DNA of 64,000 nucleotides from Octopus bimaculoides. Lineage: Eukaryota. Of the stretch, positions 2,269 through 34,215 are shown piece after piece. The stretch is taken from the NCBI RefSeq assembly GCF_001194135.2, contig NC_068984.1, positions 128,556,757-128,620,756 of the forward strand, written 5' to 3'. The translations under genes were made by a program, and so were the position numbers. The notes beneath the pieces were generated by a model. The model saw only the letters and a list, made by a program, of their open reading frames with translations, did no database searches and was not told the DNA's origin. Position 1 is the stretch's first letter; each line of letters opens with the position of its first letter.

Positions 2269-2471
2269 TCAATTGCGAGTTTGATAATCATATACAGGTC
2301 CTCTTGAAGAACAGTAATTCAAGCAATCTCTCTTCGTATAGAAGTTATTACCGTTGCCACCACATCCACCATACTGGAACATACGACAAGTTCCATAAGT
2401 TCGGTCATAATAAAATCTGGTCATTTTAGCCAAACAGAAACCAGGCTCTGGCCGCATGGCACAATAATTAC
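2269..2471 (-). CDS. Terminal coding exon 6: Kunitz domain 2 (R)NYCAMRPEPGFCLAKMTRFYYDRTYGTCRMFQYGGCGGNGNNFYTKRDCLNYCSSRGPVYDYQTRN*
   Basis: Acceptor ttatttcattttatcgcag| (phase 1). Canonical FQYGGCGGNGNNF motif with six Cys. TGA at 2271-2269. Confidence 0.95.
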
Positions 2472-3089
2472 CTGCGATAAAATGAAATAAAATAAAATAA
2501 AATATCAAAATCATATTAGTTTTAGATTGTATCGCAAACGATTATTTTGTTCCAGTATTAAATAATCAAACCAGAAATCAATTTTCTAGACAAAATTTCC
2601 AATCTATTCAACAAATATAAAAGAGATATTGTAAATCAATCTCAACAGAGATGTTGCTAGATAAAATGCGATGCTGATAGCAAACTATCGATTTCATTAT
2701 TTTTTTTCCGATGTAAAAGTTGTTGTTAAAAGTTTTAACTTCACCTTATATATATATTTTGTAATGGCCTAGTCAGAGGAAGAAGAAAACTAACCATGAT
2801 CTTTTATGCAGAATCTCTAAGGATGGTGTAAGAAAAGGAAATTGAAAGCACGACACACAGGTTCTAATAGTAAGAAGCATAACTTCAGATACCGACGTAA
2901 GACCCGGTTCCCAAGCTTGTAACGAAGGGGATTTCGCTAAAACTACAGGAGGCTCAAGTGGTGGTGTTAAACCAGGCGATATTCAAATGGCATACATACA
3001 TGTATGCATACATACATACATACATACATACATACATGCATACGGATTCATACACTTATTGCAGCGGTCCTTCAGTTTCACTAAGCCCT

Positions 3090-3415
3090 GTAAAAGAATT
3101 CGGAAGGCTGGGCCCCCAACCAAGCCTTTCGCGACACCCTTAAAGCCAGAAACTTTTTTGCACCTTCTCATACATAAAAGACCTCCTTCGGTCACGAGTG
3201 ACCATGAGATTGCACCTAGAAAGTTTCCCTCCGAAGTACAAGTCCGGGAAAATTTGTTTGTGCAAGACCAGCAGTCGCCCATGCATACCAGTTGCCCACC
3301 TCTACGTCACAGATGCTGTCCAAAAAAAGGGCAATAGCCACTAGAACTTGGCACGAGTGACGTTGCAACTCATTTCTACAGCTAAGTGAAATGGAGCAAC
3401 GTGAAATAAAGTGTA
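3090..3415 (+). mobile_element. Retroposon fragment (family F; related pieces at 26475-26648 and 60340-60480)
   Basis: Shared motif ctggagcaacgtgaaat(a/g)aag...gctcaagaacacaac across the three loci. Confidence 0.55.
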
Positions 3416-4641
3416 AACATACATACATAGTCACTTATAAAAAAACAGAAGTAAAGAAAGCGAAAAAAACAAAAACAAAAACAAACAAACGTGTGGACGT
3501 AGCACAAGAAATTTATTAATAAGTCGTTCAGAGAAGGAAAAGAGTAGTAGGTTTACGTTTCGAGCATAGCTCTTCTTCGAAAACAGGAAGATCAAGAAAG
3601 CCCCAGAGGAAAGAGGAAAAAAAAAGTCGTCAACATTCACGTGCAGTTACATTTTTGAAGTAACCAGAAGTTGAAGGAACGAAGAGAAAGTGCCTTCTGG
3701 GACAGGAGAGTGTGAAAATGGTCAGTATGTGTGTGTGTGTGTGTGGTAGCATGTGTATGTAAGTAACTGCGCGCGTGTGTAAGTAACTGCGTATGTGTGT
3801 GTGTGGTAGCGTGTGTGTGGGTGTGTGGTAGGATCTGTGTGCGTGTGTTAATGTCGCTCTGAAAGGTCAGCAGCTATAGTGACAGGTGTGTGAGTGGGTG
3901 GGTGTGACAGTGTATGTGTTTGTGTTTGAATGCGTGCGTAGATGGAAGGGTCAATAATGAGTTAGAGGCAGATGCAGTCTGAAGAGGATGTGAGACTGGG
4001 TGGGTGTGGTTGTGTGTTTGTGTGTGTGTGTTGGCATGTGTGCTTAGACGGAGTGGGAATGTACATGTGTGTGTGTGTGTACACATGTGTATGAGTGCGT
4101 GTGTGTATCACTCTGTCTGTGTGTGTCTCTCTCTCTCTTGCTTTATATATATATGTGTGTGTGTGTACGTGTGTTCCTGTGCGAATGTGTGTGTGTGTGA
4201 GGAGATGTGTATGTGTGTGTGAGGAGATGTGTATGTGTGTGGGGGATGTATGTGTGTCTATATGCGTATGAGTGTGTGAAAGTGTATGTACGAGCGTGTA
4301 TATGTGTGCGTGCGTTGTGTGTGTGGAGAGCCATGCATGCATACATACATAGAAATAGAAAGACAGACAAAAGACATGCATTATATATTTATATACACAT
4401 ATATATGCATACACGCATACATGCTCTTATACATAGCTATATACATACATAAAGCATACACTCGCACACAAACATGCATACACACATGCACACTTATACA
4501 CGTATGAATATATGCATGCATACATACACATATACATCCATAAATGCACACTCATGCATACATACACGAACACATACAGAATGTGTATATTTCATATACA
4601 TATATTCCATTCAAAATCAGTCAAAAGATAACATTTATAGA

Positions 4642-5270
4642 AAACTAGCAGCTAAGCCTGGTTTCACCCGGTCGGTTTGGATGATGTGGCTGTAAAACCT
4701 GCTCTGTGTAAGCATTCGACTTGTTTGGGCACGCTTACGTTGAAAAACAATTTTAGAATGACTTTTTTCTGTCAAAACGCTAAAAATAACTGACCAACAA
4801 CAAAATAAAAGCAATCAAAATTCAACCAAATCAAAAAATAAACCCAAATACTAAGCGAACAATGATGAACCATCCCACTTCCATTGCACGCGCACACGCA
4901 CACACAAACACACTCACACACACACATTCACATACCCTCTTTTACATACACACACATATATTCACAAAGAGTTGAAACGCTGTTTGATTTCTTCAGCGTA
5001 CAATTTTCATCATCCCACTACCAAGTATGACATCACCCTTCCTTTCTTATTCATCTATCACCACTTCCTTTCTCATTCATAAACACAAGAGTATTATTAT
5101 AGTAGATTATCTTGGTAACCATGGGAGTTATGAAAAAAAAAAATACAAAGCCCAGCAACACCACCGGATCATTCTACACTTGTGTGTAATTTTTCGCGCA
5201 ATTCCACTCAGCCGTTTGACCGTGAATCCAAAGACAAGAAAGAATCGCCCATGTCAAATTTATATCTATA
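4642..5270 (+). mobile_element. Non-autonomous Helitron-like (HINE/Lep1-like) element
   Basis: Starts aaACTAGcagctaagcctgg and ends ...catgtcaaatttatatctatag. A related 3' end (catgtcaaattt...(GACA)n(CA)n...ttttatagat) is at 11738-11912. Confidence 0.45.
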
Positions 5271-5271
5271 G

Positions 5272-5849
5272 ACGGCACTGTCATGGTATTAGCTGTCAGA
5301 ATTGAAAGTAGAACTGACAAGGAACGTTACTGCTGGTTTGAGTTGATTCTTTGGCTACTGACTAGCCGGAGCTATCTATCTGTCTGTCTGTCTATCTATC
5401 TCACTCTCTCTCTATATCTATCTATCACTCGTTCACCTCTGTTTGTGTCCGTAGAATTTATCAAATTAGAAAACGCAAATTTAATAAAGAGAGCAGTGAA
5501 AATATGCAGAATGTTTCTAAAACATCAGTCAAACAAATCTTTCCTATTGTCATATNNNNNNNNNNCGCGGACGCGCGGACGCGCGACTGCGCGTTCGGGA
5601 CCACTCTGCTTTAGTAGTACCCTTATACTCTGTGTGTTTTCAAACGCATGGATATAGGTGTTAAATTTGTTCCAATAACTTTCGAGTGATAGATAGATAG
5701 ATAGAGAGAGAGACAGACAGACAGATAGCTCGCTCCGGCCAGTCATGGTATTAGCTGTCAGTAGCCAAAGAATCAACTCAAACCAGCAGTAACGTTCCTT
5801 CAGATTTTTCTACTTTCACTTCTGACAGCTAATACCATGACAGTGCCGT
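5272..5849. mobile_element. Foldback/MITE with ~160-bp inverted arms
   Basis: Arm 5272-5431 (acggcactgtcatggtattagctgtcag...) is the reverse complement of arm 5683-5849, including an internal (TCTA/TCTG)n tract. Confidence 0.85.
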
Positions 5850-8031
5850 ATAGACTACTCCGAAATCTGGAATTTTTCTATCCAGATTATAAATTTACAT
5901 TTGTATCGATAATCCTCAACTAAATATGTAAACAATAATCTTGGAAAGTTGATATAAAGATTTCGCAAATTTAATAAAGAGAGCAGTGAAAATATGCAGA
6001 ATGTTTCTAAAACATCAGTCAAACAAATCTTTCCTATTGTCATATACATTCCATTGAGGCGTTTTGTTTCTATCCTTTTCTTTATTGGAATACTTCAAAC
6101 AGTTAGAAAGCGAATATATATATATGTCTGGATCTTTCAGTCGGTTCAAACAATTCCAAGCATTTGAGTCATTGAACTTAATCCCCAGGCTGACTCAGTG
6201 TGACATTAGGCTCTCGAATCACACAGACAGTTTACCATATTGATATCTACGGATTTATAAGGGTTGGGACATAATAATATGGCAGCAGGTACTTGACCAA
6301 AGAACCACGCAACAGAATCAAATCCGGAACCTCGTGTGTCAACTTCTTAAAGTCAGTGCACATAAATGTGTATACAAGTATGTATGTATGTATGTATGTA
6401 TGTATGTATGTATGTATGTATGTATGTATGCATGTATGTATGTATGTATGTATGTATGTTTCATTTAATGAACACAGGAGCTAAACGTGGACTACTTCAA
6501 GTTTCAAGCTCGCTAAGTGCAGTCATCGAACCAGTTTGTATTGCGTTCCTTGCACGATTCGGCAATCGTTCAGGCTCATATGAGAGGGCTACTTCGTAAG
6601 GAAATGCAAGAAAGAGAAAACTGAGAAGAAAAAGTTAAGGGAAAAGGGGAATAAAGGCTATATATCTCATGCATATATGTATATATGCATTCATTTATGC
6701 ATGCAGACATGTATACACACATGCCTGTATAAACATACATGTAATGTCATTTACATATACTCATTCAATAACTACAGTCATGATATATATGTATTTATAT
6801 GTATCCTAGACCTGGGCTTCCTTCAAGTGAACACAAGCAAAATACCTCAGACACAATATGGCATATATTCACCTCTGCTATCTCAGCCTTTGCTGCAGCA
6901 ACTATTTCCGGATTATTCCCACAAGGATTACTTTACACGGATACTTACTACTGGAATGAAACTACACTCCAAGTACTGTTCTCTCTTTCTTTCTTTTTTT
7001 CAGCACATCACACTCACTTCATACTAAAACTCTCGCCTATGGATATAATAATCGATTCCTTTACTATTTCTGTCTCCGATGAAGGGAAGTACTGGATCTT
7101 CCCAGAAACAGCTGTAAGACTCTATCCATAAAATATATTTCCAACCTTACCATTGCTCTCTTTATCCTTTATATATATATATATATATATATATACTTAA
7201 AATATNNNNNNNNNNNNNNNNNNNNNNNNNNNNNNNNNNNNNNNNNNNNNNNNNNNNNNNNNNNNNNNNNNNNNNNNNNNNNNNNNNNNNNNNNNNNNNN
7301 NNNNNNNNNNNNNNNNNNNNNNNNNNNNNNNNNNNNNNNNNNNNNNNNNNNNNNNNNNNNNNNNNNNNNNNNNNNNNNNNNNNNNNNNNNNNNNNNNNNN
7401 NNNNNNNNNNNNNNNNNNNNNNNNNNNNNNNNNNNNNNNNNNNNNNNNNNNNNNNNNNNNNNNNNNNNNNNNNNNNNNNNNNNNNNNNNNNNNNNNNNNN
7501 NNNNNNNNNNNNNNNNNNNNNNNNNNNNNNNNNNNNNNNNNNNNNNNNNNNNNNNNNNNNNNNNNNNNNNNNNNNNNNNNNNNNNNNNNNNNNNNNNNNN
7601 NNNNNNNNNNNNNNNNNNNNNNNNNNNNNNNNNNNNNNNNNNNNNNNNNNNNNNNNNNNNNNNNNNNNNNNNNNNNNNNNNNNNNNNNNNNNNNNNNNNN
7701 NNNNNNNNNNNNNNNNNNNNNNNNNNNNNNNNNNNNNNNNNNNNNNNNNNNNNNNNNNNNNNNNNNNNNNNNNNNNNNNNNNNNNNNNNNNNTATATATA
7801 TATATATATATATATCTTTTCTTTCCTTTCCTGAGCGTCCAATAACACCGTACTTATTCCATGTCCTCACGATGTTTTTTCGTGTTTTTTCTTGCGTGTT
7901 CATGTTGAAATTGATTATATATATACACACATACATATATATACATGCACATATTTTCACATCATACATACATATCCACGCAAACGTGCATGTATACCTC
8001 ATATATACATGTGTACATTTATTCATACATA

Positions 8032-8081
<50 letters not shown>

Positions 8082-8155
8082 TGCATATACACATACATAA
8101 ATACTTATATACATATACACATATACATAATACACACACGTACATATACATGCAT

Positions 8156-8207
<52 letters not shown>

Positions 8208-8212
8208 GGGAG

Positions 8213-8372
8213 AATATACAAAAAATAACAACAGACGAGGACAGGTGGTGTAAATAAGAAAAGTATATATTAGTATGACGCTCGGGAATACGGAAAGTCT
8301 TTGACGTTTCGAGCTACGCTCTTCAACAGAAAGAATACGGAGACAAGGAGAAAAACACGGAGAAAAAAAATT
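8213..8372. mobile_element. Penelope-like terminal-repeat fragment, near-identical inverted copy at 63841-64000
   Basis: 2 mismatches in ~160 bp by manual alignment. Contains gaagagcgtagctcgaaacgtc, resembling Penelope-type termini. Confidence 0.7.
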
Positions 8373-8373
8373 G

Positions 8374-8409
<36 letters not shown>

Positions 8410-9683
8410 NNNNNNNNNNNNNNNNNNNNNNNNNNNNNNNNNNNNNNNNNNNNNNNNNNNNNNNNNNNNNNNNNNNNNNNNNNNNNNNNNNNNNNNNNNN
8501 NNNNNNNNNNNNNNNNNNNNNNNNNNNNNNNNNNNNNNNNNNNNNNNNNNNNNNNNNNNNNNNNNNNNNNNNNNNNNNNNNNNNNNNNNNNNNNNNNNNN
8601 NNNNNNNNNNNNNNNNNNNNNNNNNNNNNNNNNNNNNNNNNNNNNNNNNNNNNNNNNNNNNNNNNNNNNNNNNNNNNNNNNNNNNNNNNNNNNNNNNNNN
8701 NNNNNNNNNNNNNNNNNNNNNNNNNNNNNNNNNNNNNNNNNNNNNNNNNNNNNNNNNNNNNNNNNNNNNNNNNNNNNNNNNNNNNNNNNNNNNNNNNNNN
8801 NNNNNNNNNNNNNNNNNNNNNNNNNNNNNNNNNNNNNNNNNNNNNNNNNNNNNNNNNNNNNNNNNNNNNNNNNNNNNNNNNNNNNNNNNNNNNNNNNNNN
8901 NNNNNNNNNNNNNNNNNNNNNNNNNNNNNNNNNNNNNNNNNNNNNNNNNNNNNNNNNNNNNNNNNNNNNNNNNNNNNNNNNNNNNNNNNNNNNNNNNNNN
9001 NNNNNNNNNNNNNNNNNNNNNNNNNNNNNNNNNNNNNNNNNNNNNNNNNNNNNNNNNNNNNNNNNNNNNNNNNNNNNNNNNNNNNNNNNNNNNNNNNNNN
9101 NNNNNNNNNNNNNNNNNNNNNNNNNNNNNNNNNNNNNNNNNNNNNNNNNNNNNNNNNNNNNNNNNNNNNNNNNNNNNNNNNNNNNNNNNNNNNNNNNNNN
9201 NNNNNNNNNNNNNNNNNNNNNNNNNNNNNNNNNNNNNNNNNNNNNNNNNNNNNNNNNNNNNNNNNNNNCCTAACCCTAAAACTAACCCTAACTCTAGAAT
9301 CCGAACTCTAAAATTGTTACACACATAGATACGCACAGCGTAATTTATTATATAAACAATATATGCGTATAAATTACGATTAAACCGGATGAAATATGTC
9401 ACAGGGTATAACATTTTTATGACCGCTCAGCAGTAACTCTATTGAGCTGAATTGACGTCAGTGATTGGTTGAAATTACAGAAATACGACAACTTTAACAT
9501 GGAATAACTTGCGATGTACGTTTTTTTGTTAAGAAGACTAAGAGTAAAAGATGTCTTATATGACACATTCTACCAGTGTCCCAAGTTTCAAAGTGTTTCG
9601 TTAGTGTTTTGTTAAGAAAATACTGGTGCCCCCGTTTTGAAATAGATCCAGTTAGGCTATTATAACAGTCATATATACATATG

Positions 9684-11072: not shown

Positions 11073-11866
11073 TCACTCTCTCTCTCTCTCACACACACAC
11101 ACAATCTTTCATACACACGTACATACATATGTATACATCTATNNNNNNNNNNNNNNNNNNNNNNNNNNNNNNNNNNNNNNNNNNNNNNNNNNNNNNNNNN
11201 NNNNNNNNNNNNNNNNNNNNNNNNNNNNNNNNNNNNNNNNNNNNNNNNNNNNNNNNNNNNNNNNNNNNNNNNNNNNNNNNNNNNNNNNNNNNNNNNNNNN
11301 NNNNNNNNNNNNNNNNNNNNNNNNNNNNNNNNNNNNNNNNNNNNNNNNNNNNNNNNNNNNNNNNNNNNNNNNNNNNNNNNNNNNNNNNNNNNNNNNNNNN
11401 NNNNNNNNNNNNNNNNNNNNNNNNNNNNNNNNNNNNNNNNNNNNNNNNNNNNNNNNNNNNNNNNNNNNNNNNNNNNNNNNNNNNNNNNNNNNNNNNNNNN
11501 NNNNNNNNNNNNNNNNNNNNNNNNNNNNNNNNNNNNNNNNNNNNNNNNNNNNNNNNNNNNNNNNNNNNNNNNNNNNNNNNNNNNNNNNNNNNNNNNNNNN
11601 NNNNNNNNNNNNNNNNNNNNNNNNNNNNNNNNNNNNNNNNNNNNNNNNNNNNNNNNNNNNNNNNNNNNNNNNNNNNNNNNNNNNNNNNNNNNNNNNNNNN
11701 NNNNNNNNNNNNNNNNNNNNNNNNNNNNNNNNNNNNNATATTAGCAAGGACCAAAATTTGACCCCCTTAGAACCTTCTCCGACTAAGGAAAAACCTTCAT
11801 GTCAAATTTGGAATAGATTATCCAGCAGTTTGGCCGTGCATAGAGGAAACACAGACAGACAGACAG

Positions 11867-11897
<31 letters not shown>

Positions 11898-11921
11898 GAA
11901 TTTTATAGATATGGATATATA

Positions 11922-12590
11922 TACGATGGGCTTCTTTCACTTTCCGGCTACCAAATCCACTTACAAGGCCGTGGTTGGTCCAAGGCTATAGTAGAAGACA
12001 CATGCCCAAGGTGCCACGCAGTGGGACTGAACCCGGAACCATGTGAATAGGAAGCAAGCTTCTTATAACACATTGTTAATTTTTTTCGACCTCTAGAGTA
12101 ATATGGGATTTATGAAAAGAAAGCTTTATATAACCCAGAACATATAAAACAAACGATTGCAGCATGGAAAACCTTTTTTTGTCATTCAAAAACACACAGA
12201 AACCATTGACTTTACTTAAATATTTATCTTTCATCTTTTGTATTTTACTTGTTTCATTAGAGTGCGACCATGCTGGGGCACCGTCTTGAAGAACTTATAG
12301 TCGAATGTGTCGATCCCAGTACTTTCTTTATGCTTGGCATTTATTCTATCGGGTCTTTTACCGAACCGCTAGATTACGGGGACATAAACACATCAACACC
12401 GGTTGTCAAGCGGTGGGACAGACACACACATATACGACAGGCTTCTTTCAGTTACTGTTTATCAAATCCACTCACAAGGCTTTGGTCTGCCCGAGGCTAT
12501 ATAGCAGAAGACACTTTCCTAAGGTGCCACACAGCGGGACTGAACCAGGAACCAAGTAGTTGGGAAGCAAGCTTCTTACCACACAACCTC
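11922..12590 (-). mobile_element. Two SINE family B copies (head half 11922-12072; near-full copy 12235-12590)
   Basis: Shared ccaaatccactcacaaggc...gacacttgcccaaggtgccacgcagtgggactgaacccggaacc block. Confidence 0.85.
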
Positions 12591-13209
12591 TTATTTGTAA
12601 TATGGTGTCAACATTTTCGTCGCTCGAAACTGCGACCTGCTCACCAACAAAAAAATCGTGCCGCACAATTTTAGATCAAAACTCTTGCCATGCAAGTACA
12701 ACTTAAACAAAGGCTAACTAAAAGTCTGGAAACTAGCATGGACTTTTAGAACAAATTTAAGGAAACGTTTCGGACAGAGAAAAGGTTAATCCTACGTAAC
12801 TTAAACAATGAAATTTGCAAATTTCGGAAAAAGTTTGTATTATAAGCTGAGGTGGGAGAAATCGATTTTTCAAGTCCTACATCGTATAGAACATATTTTA
12901 AAATTTAGATTTGAAAGTGGCGAGCTGGAAGAATCGTTACCGCGCCGGACAAAAAGCTTAGCGGTATTTCATCCGTCTTTACGGTCTGCGTTCAAACTCC
13001 GCCGAGGTCCTCTTTGCCTGTCATTCTTTCGGGGTCAATGAAATAAGTACCAGTTGAACACTGGAGTCAATATAATCGACTTATCCTCTTCCTGAAATTG
13101 CTGGTCTAAAATTTGAAATCGATATTTAAGTTTGAAGAAGTGAATCACCGAATTCCTTTTCAATTTATTTTCTATCCAATCTTCCTTCTGTTAAGAATGT
13201 ACCTTCGCC

Positions 13210-13435
13210 GGCGAGCTGGCAGAATCGTTAACACGCCGGGCGAAATGCTTAGCAGTATTTCGTCTGCCGTTACGTTCTGAGTTCAAATTTCGCCGAGGTC
13301 GACTTTGCTTTTCATCCTTTCGGGGTCAATAAATTAAGTACCAGTTATGCACTGGGGTCGATGTAATCTACTTAATCCCTTTGTCTGTCCTTGTTTGTCT
13401 CTTCTATGTTTAGCTTCTTGTGGGCAATAAAGAAA
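13210..13435 (+). mobile_element. SINE family A (GGCGAGCTGGCAG head), full copy with 17-18 bp TSD
   Basis: tRNA-like A/B boxes (tggcagaatcgttaa / gagttcaaatt). Flanked by aagaatgtaccttcgcc at 13193-13209 and 13437-13453. An older copy lies at ~12915-13120. Confidence 0.92.
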
Positions 13436-15019
13436 TAAGAATGTACCTTCGCCATAACTACCGCCTTCTTCTGATTTGATGCCGTAACCACCATGATCCT
13501 TTCAGTTCTGTCTTCTCTTTCTTTTAAAAGCGTAAAACTTTCGAGGTCTTTTTGTTGGACATTCCCTAGACACACGTAATCACTTACCAAATTTACTGAT
13601 TATTTTTCAGTGTCCATGGATGCTGTTCACCATGTTATCTCTTGCACCCACGAACAGAAAAGAGAGACGAATAATCTTTAAATTTGGAAAAGCTTCTCCA
13701 CCAGGAATAAGTTAATGATTTTCCTTTTCTTATTTGTCTTTTTCCTGATCTTAAACCCTTCCCTTTCAGAGCATAGACACACTTTATCCCCACATACATA
13801 TACACTTCACCCTTCCTTTTCTTCGAAATATTCACCCTTCAGCCTTGTCTCAAAATGCTTGTGTCACAAGGGTGGAGAGAAATTAATCAATATTTTCTCA
13901 TAGACTATTATATGAAGCTCTTACTAGAGAGCGTCCGTTTCTTGACGTAAAGATAACACTTAAGATAGAAGTGGCAAATGTATAATAAATGCAGTTTTCA
14001 AAGAGACCCTCATCTAAGCATGCGCCTTCAGTACACCTTTGTGTACTTTACACCATCCCCAGAATTAAGGTTTCAAAAAAAAAAAAAAAAAAAATTCAAT
14101 TTCAAAAGAAATTGTGTATTTCATGGTTTAACTATGCTAAGTTTGTTCGTAGATTATAAATATCGGATACTAATAAAGGTTAAATTCGAACTTTATAAAA
14201 AATGTGTTATTACGGATGTGTTCTTTGATAAGGAAAAAAATCTAAAAAGAGTTAAACCTGATTTGAAACTATGATTATTTCGGTTAATTATAATAATAAA
14301 TATGATTTTGTCGATAAGAGTTCCAGTCTATTTAAATCTTGAGATAAATACAGAAAATTCGGCCAATAAAACTTCTAAAATAAGTATAATTAATGTATTT
14401 TTAATTTGCTAATCGATGTATTTTCAAATCCTTATCGTTCATATATTTACATTTTCCCAATATTTTAGAATTAATTTCTAAATAAATTCTACTTTCAAAA
14501 TTGTGGCAACGTTCCACGAGTTTCCAAATAGAATTATCCTTGGAATTAATCAATACAGTAGTTCCAGTATGTTATGCTTAATTTTAGGCGATCTGCCAAT
14601 AAATATCTCTCTAAGTTGGAAGAGTTTCTCTTATACTAACAAACCACAGCGACTAACTCGTTCTTTCATGTTTCTTAGAGTGACAACTTTCCATGTTTAA
14701 AAGTAAATAGTTTTGAATTGGATGAGATACAATTCTAATTTCTAATGCATACTCGTAGTCTACCCTATGGTTCTAGACGCTAAACATAGTGTATGCCATC
14801 AATATGTTAATCAAATATGAACATTTTTTGTTGAAGTTAAGCTTACGGGGGAACCTCTGCATAGTCGATCCTACTTGAAATGGCAGTCAAATTTTCTTCA
14901 AATGACACCCTATTTTCATCAGAAAAAAAAACAACAAAAACTATTCGTTGGGTCTATCTATCTATCTATCTGTTAAAACTCACTGATTGCTTGCTTGCTC
15001 ACTTGTCTGTCATTTAATA

Positions 15020-15815: not shown

Positions 15816-16488
15816 GGTGACCCAACTGCATAGTCGTGGATAGACTATCAGTGCCGCCCATGCTGGATTGTCATTTATCCGATTCACACTTTTCTTTGAT
15901 GCAACTTTCCAACTTTCCAATAATATTCTGCTACAATCTATGTTATAATGCTTGACCATGGGAAAGAAATTGCAGATATAATCTATTATATACACAGCAT
16001 TTATATTACTCACAAAATATTTAGGTAGTTGATTTTACAAAGAAATCAAAGACTTGATTCAAGGTCTAAGACAATCTGTTTTGACAAGTTAGATTTTAAT
16101 AAAAGATGGTTCACCATTTTTAAATTTCTTTTTTACATCGTCAAATAATAAAATATGAAGTCAACGAAATAGCGCAGTAGTTGTATTAAGGTGGTTTGAA
16201 AACTTGCAGAAATAGTCCAGGAAGATACCAGCTGATAAAGTACAGCTTCCTATATTTACAATTACTATTCACACCAACCAAACCTATTTATGAGGAGAAT
16301 TAATATAGGTTTAATGAAAAGTGTTGAGGCACTTTTAGTTCAAACTATATAAGCATTTACGTGAATTTGGCAGAAATGGCTAGTAAATAAATAGAGTAGT
16401 AAAGTTCGTATTCGAAGTAATAGTACTTTAATAAATAAGTAGGAAGATTTAATATTGGATGCCTAAACAAAAAATTTATTAAACTTAC

Positions 16489-16644
16489 GGCAAGATAGTT
16501 CGCATTCTTCTTTATTTTCGAAATTGTTCGCGTTTCCTTGACAACCAGAATATGAAAATATTTCACAATGGCCTGTTTTACTGTTGAAGAAATACCGCAG
16601 CAATCGGGCGCGACATAATCCCACTTTTTGAGGTTGTTCACATA
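16489..16644 (-). CDS. Coding exon 5: Kunitz domain 1 (L)CEQPQKVGLCRARLLRYFFNSKTGHCEIFSYSGCQGNANNFENKEECELSC
   Basis: Acceptor cacttattattccag| (phase 1) and perfect donor C|GTAAGT (phase 1), 156 bp. Six Kunitz Cys and the Y-S-G-C-x-G-N-x-N-N-F signature. The ORF track translates this region in the wrong frame. Confidence 0.95.
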
Positions 16645-19681: not shown

Positions 19682-19861
19682 ATGGGGCATTGCTGAACGT
19701 GGATGCTGCGGGTTTCAAGCAACAAAGCCCGTAGTTGTTGTTCGGATGAATGACGCATTTATAATCACCAACACAGTTGACGACGGGTGAAACCTTACCG
19801 AAACAATAGTCATTCGGTGTACCGGTTTCACAAATATTCTCCACATGACCGGGACTTCCGG
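19682..19861 (-). CDS. Coding exon 4: lustrin/WR1-like Cys-rich module (A)GSPGHVENICETGTPNDYCFGKVSPVVNCVGDYKCVIHPNNNYGLCCLKPAASTFSNAP
   Basis: Acceptor tgattattttcattgtcag| (phase 1) and donor T|GTAAAT (phase 1), 180 bp. C-x2-G-x-P...C...C...C...CC spacing. Confidence 0.85.
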
Positions 19862-22291: not shown

Positions 22292-22675
22292 TGTTGGCAC
22301 TCCGTCGCTTACGACGTCGAGGGTTCCAGTTGATCGGATCAACGGAACAGCCTGCTCGTGAAATTAACGTGCAAGTGGCTGAGCACTCCACAGACACGTG
22401 TACCATTAACGTAGTTCTCGGGGATATTCAGCGTGACACAGTGTGACAAGGCTGACCCTTTCAATTACAGGCACAACAGAAACAGGAAGTAAGAGTGAGA
22501 GAAAGTTGTGGTGAAAGAGTACAGTAGGGTTCACCACCATCCCCTGCCGGAGCCTCGTGGAGCTTTAGGTGTTTTCGCTTAATAAACATTCACAACGCCT
22601 GGTCTGGGAATCGAAACCGCGATCCTATGACCGCGAGTCCACTGCCCTAACCACTGGGCCATTGCGCCTCCACTG
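22292..22675 (-). mobile_element. SINE family C (tRNA-like head GTGGAGGCGCAATGGCCCAGTGG), full length
   Basis: Highly similar to 40606-40987. Flanking cctatatat duplication. Confidence 0.9.
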
Positions 22676-23379: not shown

Positions 23380-23479
23380 CAGGAATACATTTGGCCACCT
23401 CCGTCTTGCACACGCCTGAAGGACATTTTCTTGATTCTGTTTCTACCTTGCACGTATGACCGGGGTTACATGAAACTTC
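23380..23479 (-). CDS. Coding exon 3: follistatin-N-like Cys module EVSCNPGHTCKVETESRKCPSGVCKTEVAKCIP
   Basis: Acceptor tttgctttaattcccacag| (phase 0) and donor G|GTAAGC (phase 1), 100 bp. Completes a 6-Cys module begun by the last Cys of exon 2. The ORF track shows only other frames here. Confidence 0.88.
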
Positions 23480-23764: not shown

Positions 23765-23949
23765 NNNNNNNNNNNNNNNNNNNNNNNNNNNNNNNNNNNN
23801 NNNNNNNNNNNNNNNNNNNNNNNNNNNNNNNNNNNNNNNNNNNNNNNNNNNNNNNNNNNNNNNNAAATTGATATTAATCAATTAAAACCAGTGGCTTAGC
23901 ATATTTAAAAAAATTCAAAGATTAAAAATTGTGTTATATACAAAATTAA

Positions 23950-24505: not shown

Positions 24506-25102
24506 NNNNNNNNNNNNNNNNNNNNNNNNNNNNNNNNNNNNNNNNNNNNNNNNNNNNNNNNNNNNNNNNNNNNNNNNNNNNNNNNNNNNNNNNNNNNNNN
24601 NNNNNNNNNNNNNNNNNNNNNNNNNNNNNNNNNNNNNNNNNNNNNNNNNNNNNNNNNNNNNNNNNNNNNNNNNNNNNNNNNNNNNNNNNNNNNNNNNNNN
24701 NNNNNNNNNNNNNNNNNNNNNNNNNNNNNNNNNNNNNNNNNNNNNNNNNNNNNNNNNNNNNNNNNNNNNNNNNNNNNNNNNNNNNNNNNNNNNNNNNNNN
24801 NNNNNNNNNNNNNNNNNNNNNNNNNNNNNNNNNNNNNNNNNNNNNNNNNNNNNNNNNNNNNNNNNNNNNNNNNNNNNNNNNNNNNNNNNNNNNNNNNNNN
24901 NNNNNNNNNNNNNNNNNNNNNNNNNNNNNNNNNNNNNNNNNNNNNNNNNNNNNNNNNNNNNNNNNNNNNNNNNNATATATATATATATATATATAGTTAA
25001 TAAATCCCTGAACGAGGTATAAACAGTAGCTGCACGACAACGTGAAGTATATTTGCCACTTAAATGCGGCTAACCCCTAAGGGGTAGCAGAAACTACAAC
25101 AA

Positions 25103-25311
25103 CAAAGCGGCGAGCTGGCAGAAACGTTAGCACGCCGGGCGAAATCTTTAGCTGTATTTCGTCTGCCGTTACGATCTGAGTTCAAATTTCGCCGAGGTCG
25201 ACTTTGCCTTTCATCCTTTCGGGTTCGATAAATTAAGTACCAGTTACGCACTGAGGTCGATGTAATCGACTTAATCCCTTTGTTTGTCCTTGTTTGGGCA
25301 ATAAAGAAATA
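25103..25311 (+). mobile_element. SINE family A with 14-bp TSD
   Basis: agaaactacaacaa at 25089-25102 and 25312-25325. Confidence 0.9.
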
Positions 25312-26071
25312 AGAAACTACAACAAAAAGTACAGCAGAAACAACAACAGTAGCAAAAGAAAAGAAACAGCAAAAACTCCTCAAAAGGAAGCCCTAAAAGG
25401 AACACCAACAGATACCAAACCAACAGAGTTACCCATTCCCATGTCTCATTCAGGCATGTGCAAAAACAAACAAACAAACAAAAAAAGACAAAGAATGGAA
25501 AGACGTTCACAAGAAAAAAAAAACGAAAAACGGACACAACCACAGCCCCTCCCCACAACACAGACACATTCCCACAGCCACTAACCCTAATACCCATATT
25601 ACCAACACCATCAATACCACTGCCAGTACCACAGACAAAACAGAAACCACTATTAAAAAGTATAATGAACCTTACTGCAATAAACACACACAAAAAAATA
25701 CACAGCTAATGAAATATATACAAGAACACACCAACATTACTTCAAGAAATTTTCTTTGTGCACCACCTAAAGCAACACAATACATGCAGATCCTCAGCAT
25801 TTCAAATAACATGTTCATTGACATAAAAGATTACTCCAATGCGGTGGGCATATTTCAGAAAACTATAAGTAAAACGCTTTATAAAAATCTGATTGTGGAA
25901 ACACCCAAAACTAGTCAGAGGAGTGAGAAAACCACTCACCCTCCCGACAGCCAAAACAGCTTTTGGATAAACGTCGTTGCAAGAATAGCTAGAACGAATG
26001 GGTCTGGCTTGAGTATAAATCTCTAATCGTCCCTCTTGTTGAGCCTTAGTAGCTAATAAAGAAAATATAGA

Positions 26072-27129: not shown

Positions 27130-28020
27130 AATATATTATACAAAGATTGGTGGTGCTGCATCGGTAAGTACTGTATTTATTGGAAAAAGATAAAGAGAAA
27201 GAATAATGGAATATTGCGGAGGACGGTGAAGTGGAAGTGGAGTTTTCGACGTTTCAAGCAATCTTACTTTTGGGCTAATTAAAGGTGGAAAGGCAGAAGA
27301 GTTTTTAAATCCTCTATGTTAGGACGACTGGCAGCAACTGATAGAGAACGCAAAACAATGTGAGAGAGTATGTGTCGACAGGAAGTAGTGAGAGAGAGAG
27401 AGAGAAGGAAAGAGAAAAGAAGGAGGAAAAGAAGATGGATGAGGCGTTGTAGAGAAAATGTAGAGAAAAGAGTAAAGCAGTGATCACTGTATTAGGAAGA
27501 GGAGGAGAAGGAGCCGGAGGTAAAAAGTGTTCATTCAAATTCACAAGTGTTACGGTTCTAAGTCTAAATATATATTGTTCCGTCTGTTTCCTTGAGTGCG
27601 CGGTACCAAGGTGTGCAGATAGATAATGGAGTGACCCCCTAGTGTCGGAGTGGGTGTCGACAGGCTGACCTTGTATGCGTATTAGATTATTTTGTATGTG
27701 CTCGATGATCGACGAGGTGACGACCTACGCTAAATTAAAAGGCGCCGTAAAGTTTGCATATGATTGAGTATGTGACGTTGGTTGTCGTGCAGGAGAAATT
27801 TTAGGTGATATAGCGCCGGTGATGGTTGAAATATTGTTGATGTAAGAAAGATGTTGCATCTGCGGTGTGGGCATTGAAAGTACTTACCTGGGGCGCTGTA
27901 GAGCTTTTAACTGAGAGGTTACGGAAATGTCTACTTTTATAAAAAACGAAGAGAGTTGCTGCAGGAAAGCTCGGGGTGGTTATGAGATCAGAGAGTAGAA
28001 TTAAGAAGTTTCGGATGAGT
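27130..28020 (-). mobile_element. Decayed Penelope-like element, GIY-YIG endonuclease region and 3' end
   Basis: Minus translation PGKYFQCPHRRCNIF...NFSCTTTNVTYSIICKLYGAF*FSVGRHLVDHRAH resembles the PLE motif FTCxSxNxIYxIxCxxC...YIGxTxR. Terminal ttgaaacgtc. Confidence 0.6.
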
Positions 28021-28029
28021 GTACCTTAC

Positions 28030-28157
28030 CTCGCAACGCTTTCGACAGCGGCAGATCGGACATCCAGTTCGTCCATCTGTAGCAAATCCACTCTGGAGAC
28101 ATTGAATTCCGCAGTAAGATTTTGACAAATCAAGACACCAGGGGAACAGTGGTTTAC
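28030..28157 (-). CDS. Coding exon 2: antistasin-like domain (G)KPLFPWCLDLSKSYCGIQCLQSGFATDGRTGCPICRCRKRCE
   Basis: Acceptor ctctttatctcaaaag|GT (phase 1) and donor GAG|GTAAGG (phase 0), 128 bp. Contains the C-x7-C-x3-C-...-GF-x2-D-x3-GC-x2-C-x-C pattern typical of antistasin repeats. Absent from the ORF track. Confidence 0.9.
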
Positions 28158-28189: not shown

Positions 28190-28192
28190 TGA

Positions 28193-28271: not shown

Positions 28272-29799
28272 CATTGCTTCAAACAATTTCTCTCAGAAAT
28301 TTTCATTGATATATGTATGTATGTATGTATGTACGTACGTATATATATATGTATGTATGAATATATATATATGTGTGTGTGTGTGTATGTATATATATAT
28401 ATATATATATATATAAAACCATCTATGTATCATACTTAATGTAAATATATATTTACTGCAGTACTCGTCCGGTTATAACATCTCTTACGAATATGGTGTG
28501 TTTAAAATGTATATCGGAGGTAGACGAAAATCGTCCCAGTAGCGGCTAGCGAGAATGCGAGATACATTTCGGTCTTTTTGGGCCTTGTCAATGGCGTGTA
28601 CTTAGAGCCAGCCATATGCTTTGACGAAATTCCCCGCCTTCGATGTAAAGGAAAACAAAGAAAAAAATTCACTTGTATTGCGAATAGCAAAATAAAAATC
28701 CTTATATACAATAAAAGTAGTATGAAATTAAAATAGTCATCTATGTATCATACTTAATGTAAATACATCGTTGGAAAGCAAGTTTACTGCAAATATTAAT
28801 CCAGAGATAACATTCCTTATATGTTGTGTTGTGTTTAAAAACACAAAATGACTTGATTGGACTGTTTAGTTTGTACATACGGCCCACTGCATATTTTATT
28901 TACCTGAAAAATTGCATAAAGAAGAAAAACTAAAAGACATGTTTGCTTCTGTATCGTTTAACATCTTTTCCAACCAATCACGATCAATCGCAGCACGTTC
29001 TTAATTTTGGCGCCTTTCTAAGTTAGAATGCTGCCCTTCGTATGAGCCAACTGTTTTTTTTTTTCATAAATACGTCATTTACGTATTGGCAGAGCTTACC
29101 AGTATTTTCTGGCGAATTCACGTCAGTCAGTGTAACACTTTCTCAGACAAATACACACTTGCTAATTCATATTATTCTTTCTCAACATCTACGTGCTTTA
29201 TTGAAAAGTATATTTCGTTCGTTATGTGCTTAATAATGGTTTCAAATTTTGGCACAAGGCCAACAATTCTAAGGGAGGAGGATAGTCGATTACATAAGTC
29301 CCAACACGCAAACTTTATTGACCTCGAAAGGCAAAGTCCACTTCGATGTAATTTGAACTCAAAACGTAAATAGCCGGAAGAAATGCCGCTAAGAATTTTG
29401 ATGCACTAACGATTCTGTCAGCTCGTCACCTTTTGGCATAAATATTCTACACTGAACTGACAAGTAATTAGTTCACTGTACTCTTTCGCCCCAACTTTTT
29501 CTCACTCGCTGCGATGGACTGGCATCTCGTCCAGCTGGGGGGAACACATACGCCATAGAAACCGGGAAACCGGGCCCATGGGCCTGGCTAGGCTTTGAAA
29601 GGGCGACGTTTATCGTTTTTTAACTTTTACTAGTGCTGTGTGTGTATGTGTGTATGCGTGTGTGTGTGTGTGAAGCGCACTTTTTTGGTTGTTATAATTG
29701 CTTCTTTTGACGCTATTTGTCTTCATGCAACGAAAATATTAACAGCAAATTAATTTCAATTGCAGTGAAAGATACTTTGAAATATTAAACACTCTATGG

Positions 29800-30096: not shown

Positions 30097-30249
30097 CTCT
30101 ATGGTATCTTGTTAAAATCTTATGTGCTTGATTTTATGACATATATACGCTGGTCCTTTCTTTAACATTGGCGAGCTCAGACTTTTACTACGATCCTTTA
30201 AATTAATGAATAAATCAATTTAAAAAGTTCACAAATTTACTCTTTTACT

Positions 30250-30483
30250 CTTTTATTCTTTTACTTGTTTCAGTCATTTGACTGCGGCCATGCTGGAGCA
30301 CCGCCTTTAGTCGAGCAAATCGACCCCAGGACTTATTCTTTGGATGCCTAGTACTTATTCTATCGGTCTCTTTTGCTGAACCGCTAAGTTACGGGGACAT
30401 AAACACACCAGCATCGGTTGTCAAGCGATGTTGGGGTGGGGTGGGGGACAAACACAGACACACAAACATATACACACGCATAC

Positions 30484-30514
<31 letters not shown>

Positions 30515-30672
30515 TACGACGGGCTTCTTTCAGTTTCCGTCTACCAAATCGACTCACAAGGCTTTGGTCGGCCCGAGGCTATAGTAGAAAACACTTGCCA
30601 TGCAGTGGGACTGAACCCGGAACTATGTGGTTAGTAAGCAAGCTAATTACCACACAGCCACACCTGCGCCTA
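30250..30672 (-). mobile_element. SINE family B, full copy
   Basis: Head ggcgcagg...gctgtgtggtaa on minus strand; internal (TA)n/(CA)n. Confidence 0.9.
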
Positions 30673-31140: not shown

Positions 31141-31935
31141 GAATGGTGGGTGGGAAAGATGGATGGATAACATCCAGACTCTGGATGTTATTTCTAATTA
31201 AAATAACGCCTACATACACAAACATAGAAGCACACATGTATATAGATATATGCATATATATATATNNNNNNNNNNNNNNNNNNNNNNNNNNNNNNNNNNN
31301 NNNNNNNNNNNNNNNNNNNNNNNNNNNNNNNNNNNNNNNNNNNNNNNNNNNNNNNNNNNNNNNNNNNNNNNNNNNNNNNNNNNNNNNNNNNNNNNNNNNN
31401 NNNNNNNNNNNNNNNNNNNNNNNNNNNNNNNNNNNNNNNNNNNNNNNNNNNNNNNNNNNNNNNNNNNNNNNNNNNNNNNNNNNNNNNNNNNNNNNNNNNN
31501 NNNNNNNNNNNNNNNNNNNNNNNNNNNNNNNNNNNNNNNNNNNNNNNNNNNNNNNNNNNNNNNNNNNNNNNNNNNNNNNNNNNNNNNNNNNNNNNNNNNN
31601 NNNNNNNNNNNNNNNNNNNNNNNNNNNNNNNNNNNNNNNNNNNNNNNNNNNNNNNNNNNNNNNNNNNNNNNNNNNNNNNNNNNNNNNNNNNNNNNNNNNN
31701 NNNNNNNNNNNNNNNNNNNNNNNNNNNNNNNNNNNNNNNNNNNNNNNNNNNNNNNNNNNNNNNNNNNNNNNNNNNNNNNNNNNNNNNNNNNNNNNNNNNN
31801 NNNNNNNNNNNNNNNNNNNNNNNNNNNNNNNNNNNNNNNNNNNNNNNNNNNNNNNNATATATATATATATATATAAATAAATGAAAGCCCTAACGATGTA
31901 TAAAGGAAACAGAAAACGGATGAAAGTTGACATAC

Positions 31936-32023
31936 CATCGCGATAATTAAAGGAAAATACTCCAACATTGGCCAAATAGCAAACAACTATAAAAATAGTT
32001 AAACAACCGCTTTTATTGATCAT
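31936..32023 (-). CDS. Coding exon 1 of a secreted multidomain protease-inhibitor gene: signal peptide MINKSGCLTIFIVVCYLANVGVFSFNYRD
   Basis: ATG at 32023. Basic-then-hydrophobic N-terminus. Preceded by a pyrimidine-rich acceptor (ttttattttccttttacaatttccag|, exon starts 32034). Ends at a phase-1 donor G|GTATGT. Confidence 0.85.
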
Positions 32024-33654
32024 GTTGAATGGAACTGGAAATTGTAAAAGGAAAATAAAAGGATTAAGATATTTTATCATGGAATTATGATTTCAGTGTT
32101 AGGTCATTTGAGTTATGAGAGGGTTAGTAGATTTAGTGAAATGAACGAGCTATCTAAAACAGCGCAATATGTACACCATGCTTCTCTTTCAACTATGTTA
32201 ATTTTCTTTCAGATTTCTCTGACTTCAACATGGTACATTGCATTCACAAAAGTTTTAACTTCAGGGAGTTGGTGGCAAGCATTATTATAACTTATATGAA
32301 CATGTGCTGTTGGGTGTTTTTAGAAGAGCTTTTCTTTTTTGTATTTGCATCTTGCTTTTCTCCGTGAAAACCTTGATGTCATCAGTGAGGAGCACGGTGA
32401 AATATTTCACCAACAAAGCTAACAAGGCCGCTGAGATACTGCCATGATGAGTGAATATGTTACGTCTCTGGTTAAAAACGATGAAAGCAGTCACAAAATA
32501 AAACTGCGATCTTCAAAGCACTTTTAATTTTAATTTTAGAGCTGTTTCATATTTTTTTAGCTTGTCATTTATTTATTAAATGCAATCATTTGGAACATTT
32601 TCGGAAAATTCAACATGAAATTGATTCCTTTTTCTCTCAACATAGGAATGAAAACGAGGCCAGCATCTAGCTCCAGGTGAAAGTTGTATTATAGAATGTC
32701 TAACTACAAAGCTAAAATTCTTTTCGAAAATATCGATACCAGGCGGAAGCTAAGATCACGTTTGAACTCAGCACGGAAAAATATATGTAGACAAACAAAA
32801 AAATCCAGATTAATAACACCCATATTATCTAATGTATGAAGTAGAGACAGCCTAAAATATATCAGATTTGCAATATGCAGTGTACTAGTTGATGCAATAG
32901 CATTTATGATAAATATGAGTAGAAATAAATCGAACCAGGTAGGGGAGAACGAAATGAAAACTGGAATGTACGACTGACAATCAGTTGGCAGAACAGAAAT
33001 ATAGAAAGAAGTGAAGAAATGTAAGATATTGCAACCAATTTTTTAATGTTATATGGAAAAATGAGTAAAATATAGACGAGAAAGTTAGCCTAGTTCAAAG
33101 AGAAAAAAAATATATATATTGCCATAGAAAATATCAGTTGAAGAAATAATTGTACATATATTATTGACATAGGAGATTTTATTGAGAAATGATGCAAAGA
33201 AAACACGAAATAAGATTATATCAAGTTTCACCTCAATATGGAAAAATAAATCGTCAAGTAATTAAGTCTTGGGTGGTCAGTGTCGAGTGATGCGGACATA
33301 ATTATCGAGGTGGAAGCGATGAGGTAGTAAACCTCTAATGCTTGCAATATATTTTTCCTTCTGTCCTTTTTTTTTAATTAATCAAATATAGTGCTCATAA
33401 AATTGATATGTCCTGCCATACTGGTGAAATTGATGTAACTGATGCTCAGTTTGGACATCCATAGATCGATGTCTGTAGAGAAATGTGAGCGACGAAGTAA
33501 TTTTTGTTTCTACGCTATGGTGTTGGACAATCTTAAAACATTTAAAAACTAATTTTACAAAACAAAGCAATTTCACTGCTTATTTTTCAATACTCACCCC
33601 TACTAAAGGGAAGGTTGGTTTTCCTCCAAAAGTACTGTTTTGAATAGCATGATA

Positions 33655-33842
33655 ATGGTTTCAAATTTTGGCACAAAAGTCGATTACATCGACTCCAATG
33701 CTTAGCAAGTATTCACTTTATCGACACTCCGAAAGGCAAAATCAACCGCGGCAGAATTTGAACTCAGAACGTAAAGAACCGGAAAAAATATCGCTTAACA
33801 TTTTGTCCGGCACGCTAACGATTCTGCTAGCTCGCCGCCTTT
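33655..33842 (-). mobile_element. SINE family A copy. Further copies at ~20695-21010, 21985-22115, 29240-29430, 36520-36735, 44280-44400, 48305-48535, 49350-49530, 52680-52775, 57185-57310
   Basis: Shared cgaaaggatgaaaggcaaagtcgacctcggcggaatttgaactcagaacg core. Confidence 0.8.
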
Positions 33843-34042
33843 GTGACTAGCATCATAGTACGAGATGAAGATAAAGAAGATTCTTAAAATATCCTAATCG
33901 ATCAATTTCATATTGCGACAAATCTGATACAAAAAAAAGCAATGAAAGAAATAACGTAAGAAATACGTCATAAAGAAGAAAAAATACAGAATAAATAAAA
34001 TTTAATATATTATAGAATCACGAAGAAAATAAGAATTCATAC

Positions 34043-34162
34043 CTTTTTTGATATTTCAATTTCCTGCTTATTATGTATTCTTATATTACTTTGAAATGCA
34101 ACAAACTTTAAGAAACGATCTAGTGTCGTGGTCAGTCAAGTTGGGCACGAAGTATTCTCATT
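34043..34162 (-). other. Candidate non-coding first exon (5' UTR) of the inhibitor gene
   Basis: Starts about 31 nt below a TATATAA box at a CTAAT initiator-like sequence. Ends at AAG|GTATGA. Supplies the donor needed for the acceptor at 32035. Confidence 0.6.
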
Positions 34163-34215
34163 AGTCAACAACAGGATACATTCTGCTTATATAGGGAACA
34201 TTGTCAACATTGACA
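34160..34215 (-). promoter_or_regulatory. Candidate core promoter: TATA box (34193-34187) plus an upstream TGTCAA-N2-TTGACA palindrome
   Basis: Minus strand reads ...tgtcaatgttgacaatgttccCTATATAAgc..., with initiator-like spacing downstream. Confidence 0.55.

Follow-up and report, generated by a model that had tools for sequence, protein, structure and literature searches.

An octopod gene for a predicted secreted mosaic protease inhibitor with antistasin-like, lustrin-like and Kunitz modules in Octopus bimaculoides

Introduction

Boophilin (PDB 2ODY), bikunin (1BIK), SmCI (4BD9) and tissue factor pathway inhibitor (TFPI) carry canonical Kunitz/BPTI domains in tandem, with the standard spacing of six cysteines and an exposed loop that presents the P1 residue. 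Here, we describe a gene with the same tandem arrangement in a window of 64,000 nucleotides (nt) from Octopus bimaculoides (NCBI RefSeq assembly GCF_001194135.2, contig NC_068984.1, positions 128,556,757 to 128,620,756). All positions given below are those of this window. The coding part of the gene lies on the minus strand between 32023 and 2269 and codes for a protein of 284 amino acids (aa), in which the two Kunitz domains stand behind a cassette of three modules with 18 cysteines. Boophilin, bikunin, SmCI and TFPI lack such an antistasin-linker-lustrin cassette ahead of their Kunitz domains.

A design with unrelated small inhibitor-type modules ahead of one or more Kunitz domains is also found in the vertebrate proteins WFIKKN1/2 and eppin. 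The WAP, Kazal, Ig and NTR domains of these proteins were not detected in the octopus protein by Pfam. The gene described here is a genuine, already annotated and uncharacterised octopod member of the mosaic Kunitz inhibitors. Its best explanation, which we consider probable, is that it codes for a secreted, disulfide-rich mosaic that would act as a multi-headed serine-protease inhibitor.

Gene structure and conservation in octopods

For identification of the exons, the minus strand was translated from stop to stop, cysteine-rich candidates were selected and their borders were read. An ATG-started hydrophobic exon ending in phase 1 was searched for as exon 1. This independent rebuild resulted in six coding exons, with GT-AG borders at every intron and intron phases of 1, 0, 1, 1 and 1. 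After splicing they form an open reading frame (ORF) of 855 nt without internal stop. Among the encoded 284 aa are 32 cysteines. The signal peptide contains two of these and the mature part the other 30, with six in each module. Exon chain, ORF, phases, product and mature cysteine count match exactly what the first-pass annotation of this DNA had proposed from the raw sequence. The protein is 100% identical, letter for letter, to XP_052823667.1/XP_052823668.1 of O. bimaculoides, which are named 'tissue factor pathway inhibitor' in RefSeq.

Exon 1 (32023..31936, minus strand like all following exons, 88 nt) starts with the ATG at 32023, codes for the signal peptide (aa 1 to ~24) and ends in phase 1 at the donor G/GTATGT. 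Its translation is identical to the N-terminus of XP_052823667.1. Exon 2 (28157..28030, 128 nt, phase 1 to 0) codes for module 1, an antistasin-like unit of six cysteines (aa 30-70), and at its end for C71, the first cysteine of module 2. Most of module 2, a six-cysteine linker (aa 71-105), is encoded by exon 3 (23479..23380, 100 nt, phase 0 to 1). Module 3, of a divergent Lustrin_cystein type (aa 106-165), is located on exon 4 (19861..19682, 180 nt, phase 1 to 1) and Kunitz domain 1 (aa 166-218, P1 = Arg177) on exon 5 (16644..16489, 156 nt, phase 1 to 1). Exon 6 (2471..2269, 203 nt including the TGA at 2271-2269) comprises Kunitz domain 2 (aa 219-272, P1 = Leu231), followed by a C-terminal tail of 12 residues, SSRGPVYDYQTRN. 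Each module is located on its own exon and the units belong to phase class 1-1, with exons 4 and 5 each forming one such unit and exons 2 and 3 forming one jointly, split by a phase-0 intron. One module per exon in a phase 1-1 layout is the classic pattern of assembly by exon shuffling.

The first-pass annotation had also stated that the exons of 128, 100 and 156 bp are out of frame in the program-made list of ORFs. This applies to the 100-nt exon, which is not represented in the list, but parts of the 128-nt exon (ORF 27988..28128) and of the 156-nt exon (ORF 16463..16624) are present in the correct frame.

The mature protein has a mass of about 29 kDa and an isoelectric point of 8.6, and no N-glycosylation sequon was found in it. 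Its precursor has a single hydrophobic segment, at residues 4-27, which is conserved in three genera. No other stretch resembling a transmembrane segment was found. Judged from this feature the protein looks secreted, in line with the earlier proposal.

The gene was also thought to be hidden from annotation. This does not hold, as the identical RefSeq protein exists; a split of the gene, into fragments of 85 and 212 aa, is found only in the older annotation of O. bimaculoides. The first of these (A0A0L8FPB5, 85 aa, 'Antistasin-like domain-containing protein' in UniProt) corresponds to exons 1 and 2 read through into intron 2, and the 212-aa fragment begins at exon 3. A search of 5.8 billion proteins revealed a protein of 284 aa in O. 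sinensis (83% identity over the full length) and one of 275 aa in Argonauta hians (60%); XP_052823667.1, XP_052823668.1 and the two older fragments fall into the same 90% cluster as the O. sinensis protein. Annotation of full-length orthologues exists for O. sinensis, O. vulgaris and A. hians.

The window has a G+C content of 36.5% and contains 18 runs of N. Eight of them lie between 2269 and 32023, all of them in introns: four in intron 5 (5556-5565, 7206-7792, 8410-9268 and 11143-11737), one in intron 3 (21470-21549), two in intron 2 (23765-23864 and 24506-24974) and one in intron 1 (31266-31856). The latter ends 79 nt from the exon 1 donor and is the gap closest to any exon. With eight gaps in a span of 30 kb, which are kept in the chromosome-level assembly, and with a locus that was split in an earlier annotation, the gene might be an artefact or a pseudogene, that is, a chance join of unrelated cysteine-rich exons across gaps. 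Comparison with the O. bimaculoides chromosome CM046604.1 (GCA_001194135.2) showed 0 mismatches over 42 kb. As this assembly has the same sequence and the same gaps, it is not an independent test. For such a test we turned to O. sinensis and A. hians, whose orthologous loci are both free of N, and determined their exon borders by a brute-force GT-AG search reproducing each annotated protein. Each locus gave one unique solution with six exons, and the internal exons have lengths of 128, 100, 180 and 156 nt in all three species. The orthologous proteins are colinear with the O. bimaculoides product, without any indel between the two Octopus proteins of 284 aa. Therefore, no coding exon is concealed in a gap. 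All 30 mature cysteines (30/30) are invariant across three genera. Six exons with the same internal lengths and phases in two gap-free genomes of different genera, intact ORFs with all cysteines conserved, the low ratio of nonsynonymous to synonymous substitution rates (dN/dS) relative to Argonauta given below, and independent annotation pipelines that give the same 284-aa product effectively refute a chance join.

Between O. bimaculoides and O. sinensis, dN/dS values, which rest on small counts, are 0.62 for the mature protein (dS 0.15), about 0.35 for the Kunitz domains and 0.63-0.78 for the cassette modules. In the comparison of O. bimaculoides with Argonauta the value is 0.18 over aa 30-272, with dS saturated. 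From these figures it appears that the framework is constrained and the loops are fast-changing, as is usual in secreted inhibitors.

The two Kunitz domains

Analysis of the whole protein with Pfam revealed two Kunitz domains only (PF00014, two stretches, 114.5 bits with a cut-off of 21), the same two that had been recognized before. Both show the spacing C-x8-C-x15-C-x7-C-x12-C-x3-C, with cysteines at 167/176/192/200/213/217 in Kunitz 1 and at 221/230/246/254/267/271 in Kunitz 2. By phmmer, BPTI, boophilin, bikunin and SmCI were matched with E values between 1e-13 and 9e-37. Among solved structures, SmCI (4BD9, 9e-37) and boophilin (2ODY, 1.4e-28) are the best relatives, followed by bikunin and TFPI. 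Kunitz 1 aligns to residues 4-56 of BPTI and places Arg177 at the position of BPTI Lys15. This P1 Arg is invariant in three genera, and the loop reads GLCRARLLRYFFN, compared to GPCKARIIRYFYN in BPTI. The P1 residue of Kunitz 2 is Leu231 in Octopus and Tyr in Argonauta.

TFPI is only the fourth-best solved relative. It has three Kunitz domains and a basic tail and belongs to the vertebrate TF/FVIIa/FXa system; this combination is not found in the octopus protein, in which two Kunitz domains follow an unrelated 18-cysteine cassette. The RefSeq name TFPI reflects Kunitz similarity only and is misleading. The database names of the matches, 'TFPI', 'boophilin-H2-like' and 'BPTI/Kunitz domain-containing protein 4-like', are likewise derived from Kunitz similarity.

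Kunitz and antistasin folds serve in venoms and in the saliva of blood feeders. The closest named relatives of the octopus protein include tick boophilin as well as sea-anemone SHPI and stichotoxins, and its evolution between the Octopus species is fairly fast (dN/dS 0.62). These observations would fit a role in the venom or saliva produced by the posterior salivary gland, with Kunitz domains acting on haemostatic proteases or ion channels of the prey and not on endogenous proteases. However, unlike typical venom families, the gene is apparently single-copy: its orthologues in three genera are 1:1, and the window shows no tandem expansion. In the literature, no link to the salivary gland was found. 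We therefore regard a function in venom as quite improbable.

The N-terminal cassette and its arthropod relatives

Lustrin A from abalone nacre and nematode Lustrin_cystein/WR1 proteins with Kunitz domains are secreted proteins in which lustrin-type cysteine-rich repeats (C...C...C...C...CC) occur together with a Kunitz-type domain, in lustrin A as a Kunitz-like C-terminus. Lustrin A belongs to the matrix proteins; it is large and repetitive, with Pro-rich and Gly/Ser-rich spacers. Module 3 of the octopod protein differs from its repeats in that it stays below the Pfam threshold for Lustrin_cystein when analyzed alone: no Pfam family was assigned to it, and PF14625 matched none of the three octopod modules even at E <= 10 (0/3 at E <= 0.01).

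To find relatives of the cassette, an alignment of the 137 N-terminal residues was used for an exhaustive profile search against 1.84 billion representative proteins. Beyond the octopod cluster, this search returned three proteins only. The best of them is an arthropod protein of 1522 aa from a Logan contig (P0075), matched across all three modules with E 9.6e-13, in which Pfam detects six Thyroglobulin_1, four Antistasin, two WAP and three Lustrin_cystein stretches. Direct comparison of the octopus cassette with this protein by hhalign gave a probability of 98% (E 1.8e-13). Module 3 aligns with residues 185-231 of P0075, a stretch that matches PF14625 at 43.3 bits. Another match of the search, a metagenome protein with a PAN domain (P0076, E 2.8e-4), was rejected as spurious, as it has no cysteine framework in common with the cassette.

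The P0075 family is pan-arthropod and was found in Anopheles (AGAP004333), fleas, Lepidoptera, wasps, crustaceans and a pseudoscorpion. It corresponds to the arthropod thyropins with WAP and antistasin domains (WAP-ATN group; PMC3407033). In a joint alignment of three octopod and 30 arthropod cassettes, all 18 cysteine columns (18/18) are conserved, including the lustrin pattern C..C..C..C..CC. In the octopod lustrin-type module, the loop between Cys1 and Cys2 is shorter by 9-10 residues, and because of this deletion the Pfam model misses it. PF14625 matches 30 of the 33 modules, namely 30/30 from arthropods and 0/3 from octopods. By transitive homology, module 3 can be classified as a divergent Lustrin_cystein domain. 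The earlier designation as lustrin-like is thereby supported, even though the module fails Pfam directly.

The arthropod proteins share the 18-cysteine cassette with every cysteine column kept but differ from the octopod protein in several respects. They are up to 1522 aa long, contain several Thyroglobulin_1 and WAP domains, neither of which Pfam detects in the octopod protein, and end with a C-terminal hydrophobic anchor. Their cassettes have an Arg at the antistasin P1 position and a longer first lustrin loop, unlike those of Octopus.

The joint alignment of 33 sequences also served as a profile for a search of the PDB, in which antistasin (1SKZ) was found with E 1.1e-6. Module 1 aligned on the reactive-site subdomain of 1SKZ (C33-R34-V35-H-C37 ... 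GCEFCKC), and the N-terminal subdomain of the second antistasin repeat (residues 62-82) was matched by the first part of module 2. A profile of the octopod sequences alone gave chance matches to lactoferrin only, so that the larger profile was needed to reach antistasin. With Pfam, module 1 in isolation scores 22.5-22.6 bits on Antistasin (PF02822, cut-off 21.2) in O. bimaculoides, O. sinensis and A. hians. The Pfam support is marginal, as the score is 18.4 bits within the 137-aa piece and the domain is not reported for the whole protein. Together with the 1SKZ match, these scores bear out the antistasin module named in the first-pass annotation.

Antistasin belongs to the leech inhibitors of family I15, like hirustasin, bdellastasin, guamerin and gigastasin. 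We take Arg34-Val35 to be its reactive site. Module 1 resembles the reactive-site subdomain of antistasin, with its pattern C-R34-V35-H-C ... G-C-x2-C-x-C. Compared to the leech inhibitors, the order in the octopus protein is shifted, as the C-terminal subdomain comes first and the module of N-subdomain type follows. The residue equivalent to P1 is Gly46 in three Octopus species (C-G-I-Q/R-C), in contrast to Arg in Argonauta (C-R-L-Q-C) and in the arthropod cassettes (C-R-M-x-C). The motif C-R-x-x-C with the basic P1 residue of the antistasin family is absent from Octopus.

Module 2 had been described as follistatin-N-like. It resembles FOLN (PF09289), where it reaches 20.2 bits, under the cut-off of 21.1, in O. 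bimaculoides only and over profile positions 1-16 of 22. Only 2 of the 33 homologous modules match FOLN at E <= 0.01. Membership in this family is not supported by these values, and the N-terminal subdomain of antistasin aligns better. The follistatin domain of WFIKKN2 (6MAA) gave a weak, non-significant match to the region of modules 1 and 2 (E 0.05-0.8). From the alignments, the best reading of modules 1 and 2 is a single unit of antistasin type, in agreement with the gene structure, in which exons 2 and 3 form one phase 1-1 unit with an internal phase-0 intron.

As a further test, hidden Markov models were built from the arthropod sequences alone, and the octopod modules were scored against 300 shuffles with fixed cysteines. 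Module 1 reached 25-33 bits and module 3 reached 17-22 bits; in both cases none of the shuffles (0/300) attained the score. For module 2 the scores were 12-15 bits, and 6-13 of the 300 shuffles attained them.

The 33-sequence profile also matched the start of module 2 (dpCegveCpegeeCeaqevkC) to RhTx, a centipede toxin of 27 residues (2MVA), with E 0.0028. This may reflect a shared small hairpin motif or chance.

In some arthropod proteins the cassette is followed by a Kunitz domain. One of them (P0141) shows Antistasin, linker and Lustrin_cystein and then a Pfam-positive Kunitz domain, colinear with octopus residues 53-217. In P0075, the third cassette is followed by a degenerate Kunitz-like stretch (residues 1030-1085, C-x7-C ... 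C-x3-C), which Pfam does not call and which is colinear with octopus Kunitz 1. The compact form with signal peptide, cassette and two Kunitz domains was found in octopods only, among the proteins searched. A literature search for the accessions, the RefSeq names and AGAP004333 found no mention. The suggestion of a lineage-specific combination thus stands for the compact, stand-alone form with two Kunitz domains. It does not stand for the string of antistasin, linker and lustrin modules, sometimes with Kunitz, which is colinear in arthropod proteins. Judging from these comparisons, the parts of the compact form, and even their order, are older than Octopoda.

As the cassette is homologous to the repeated unit of large arthropod proteins with a transmembrane anchor, the octopod protein could also be mainly a matrix, structural or adhesive component, e.g., of the cuticle, sucker lining, egg case, mucus or basement membrane. 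Its cysteine-rich modules would then bind matrix partners, with inhibition being secondary; papilin, lustrin A and the thyroglobulin/WAP/antistasin proteins of arthropods would be comparable. In molluscan shell-matrix proteomes, antistasin, WAP, lustrin and Kunitz modules appear repeatedly (PMC3374290, which cites Shen et al. 1997 on lustrin A), and the loss of the antistasin P1 Arg in Octopus would fit such a role as well. However, the protein is small and contains no low-complexity, Pro-rich or Gly/Ser-rich spacers and no chitin-binding or collagen-like domain. In addition, both Kunitz loops are canonical and intact, with a P1 class that is conserved across genera. We consider a mainly structural role unlikely, and inhibition of proteases remains the preferred explanation.

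It may also be that the antistasin-like module, the six-cysteine linker and Lustrin_cystein, optionally with Kunitz, form an ancient unnamed supradomain that acts as one unit and is common to the membrane-anchored thyropin/WAP proteins of arthropods and the compact secreted protein of octopods. Octopods would have excised it and kept it as a stand-alone gene, and in the genus Octopus the subsequent change of P1 from Arg to Gly would have led to a new target or a non-inhibitory role. This idea is tentative, and we put it forward as speculation.

Proposed function

The proposed inhibitor consists, in order, of a putative signal peptide, the 18-cysteine cassette (antistasin-like module, six-cysteine linker of the antistasin N-subdomain type, divergent Lustrin_cystein) and two canonical Kunitz/BPTI domains. 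It would inhibit extracellular serine proteases with several heads by the standard (Laskowski) mechanism. Kunitz 1, with P1 Arg177 in a BPTI-like loop, would block trypsin-like enzymes, and enzymes of the chymotrypsin or elastase type would be the targets of Kunitz 2, with Leu231 (Tyr in Argonauta) at P1. In Argonauta, where P1 is Arg, the antistasin-like module could serve as a third head. Because of the Gly at the position of the reactive Arg34, this module is in Octopus probably retargeted, or acts in binding or anchoring rather than as a trypsin-type head. We infer secretion, inhibitory activity and specificity from knowledge of the families to which the observed gene model, conservation, module homology and P1 residues point.

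Several observations weigh against this explanation. Gly46 in Octopus argues, by its position in the alignment, against a third trypsin-type reactive site. The cassette relatives are large membrane-anchored arthropod proteins of unknown function, so the cassette need not be inhibitory. Its dN/dS of 0.6-0.8 between the two Octopus species can be explained either by relaxed constraint or by adaptive change. In the literature, no biochemical data were found on the protein or its orthologues. Structure prediction by AlphaFold2 gave a moderate mean confidence for the cassette (predicted local distance difference test, pLDDT, of 73.8, 33-sequence alignment), and a Foldseek comparison of this model with the PDB gave no significant match (best E 1.1), an outcome often seen with small disulfide-rich modules. 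The AlphaFold2 model of the full protein from an alignment of four sequences was unusable (pLDDT 35.6).

Gene flanks

On the 5' side, a polypyrimidine tract with AG at 32036-32035 (32024..32036, minus strand) forms a candidate 3' splice site 11 nt upstream of the ATG; if it is used, one or more untranslated exons would lie further upstream. In an alternative O. vulgaris model (CAI9722157.1, P0070), this site is read through. A second ATG in frame, at 32080 (minus strand), precedes the annotated start by 57 nt, and translation from it would extend the protein by MIKYLNPFIFLLQFPVPFN. We prefer the downstream ATG at 32023, because the likely 3' splice site separates the two ATGs and every annotated orthologue begins with MINKSG or MVNT.

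Further upstream, a TATA-like motif, TATATAAG (34196-34189), is followed by a putative untranslated leader exon up to a GT donor at 34042-34041 (34041..34196, minus strand), both predicted from the nucleotide sequence. The first-pass annotation had extended the gene to 34193. This position falls inside the TATA-like motif, whose role is putative, and the coding part stops at 32023. The region 34041..34196 has 93% identity to O. sinensis, and the flanking introns are about equally similar. Footprinting of promoter and leader by conservation was uninformative, since the O. sinensis introns are ~90% identical throughout and Argonauta shows no non-coding similarity.

The N-terminal extension of CAI9722157.1 (296 aa) maps weakly to 41277-41309 and 33589-33633 on the minus strand, which suggests upstream, probably untranslated exons; the transcript may start near 41.3 kb, beyond the range given in the first-pass annotation. 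At the C-terminus of this model, Kunitz 2 is truncated after GGCGGN and the protein ends with ERNLNSQLC. This ending resembles the '..RRNLNSERN..' peptides from a repeat family of ~200 bp (e.g., 18766-18936 and 25060-25383) and could be due to exonisation of a repeat or to an annotation artefact.

On the 3' side, pattern matching revealed candidate poly(A) hexamers of the AATAAA/ATTAAA type starting at 2105 and 2005 (2000..2105, minus strand), 165-265 nt past the stop.

Repeats and other features of the window

The ~200-bp interspersed repeat family has 13 copies in the window, most of them in introns of the gene (12911-13442, 17846-18062, 18786-19004, 20805-21010, 25101-25296, 29312-29433, 33677-33844, 36495-36735, 48300-48538, 49345-49530, 52680-52779 and 57179-57306). 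Many copies were also seen in the O. sinensis locus. The family looks SINE-like (short interspersed nuclear element); ARAGORN detected no tRNA-like head and Rfam gave no match. A second interspersed family comprises 8 copies of 200-430 bp (11863-12588, 19456-19632, 30235-30667, 42463-42660, 45107-45461, 45769-45943 and 62025-62202). In addition, a repeat pair of ~380 bp (22291-22674 and 40605-40988) is 91-93% identical to O. sinensis copies.

Microsatellite-like tracts, TG/CA-rich or of the TATG type, are located at 1300-1490, 3960-4590, 6330-6470, 7900-8400, 49480-50260, 55800-56770, 57550-57860 and other positions. On both strands, they give rise to spurious ORFs rich in Cys/Val and Tyr/Ile. 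Many of the tracts adjoin assembly gaps, which suggests that the gaps are caused by simple repeats. Scans of the window for tRNAs and Rfam families were empty, and no other convincing protein-coding ORF was seen in it.

Conclusions

From the raw sequence alone, all six exons of the gene were recovered exactly despite eight gaps in the assembly. Automatic domain annotation sees the Kunitz half only. The new annotation is modest. It comprises the 18-cysteine cassette, homologous to the repeat unit of arthropod thyroglobulin/WAP/antistasin proteins, the divergent Lustrin_cystein module and the change of P1 from Arg to Gly in Octopus, not in Argonauta. Should saliva, haemolymph or mucus turn out to contain the protein in large amounts, it would qualify as a well-defined candidate for a regulator of cephalopod protease cascades.

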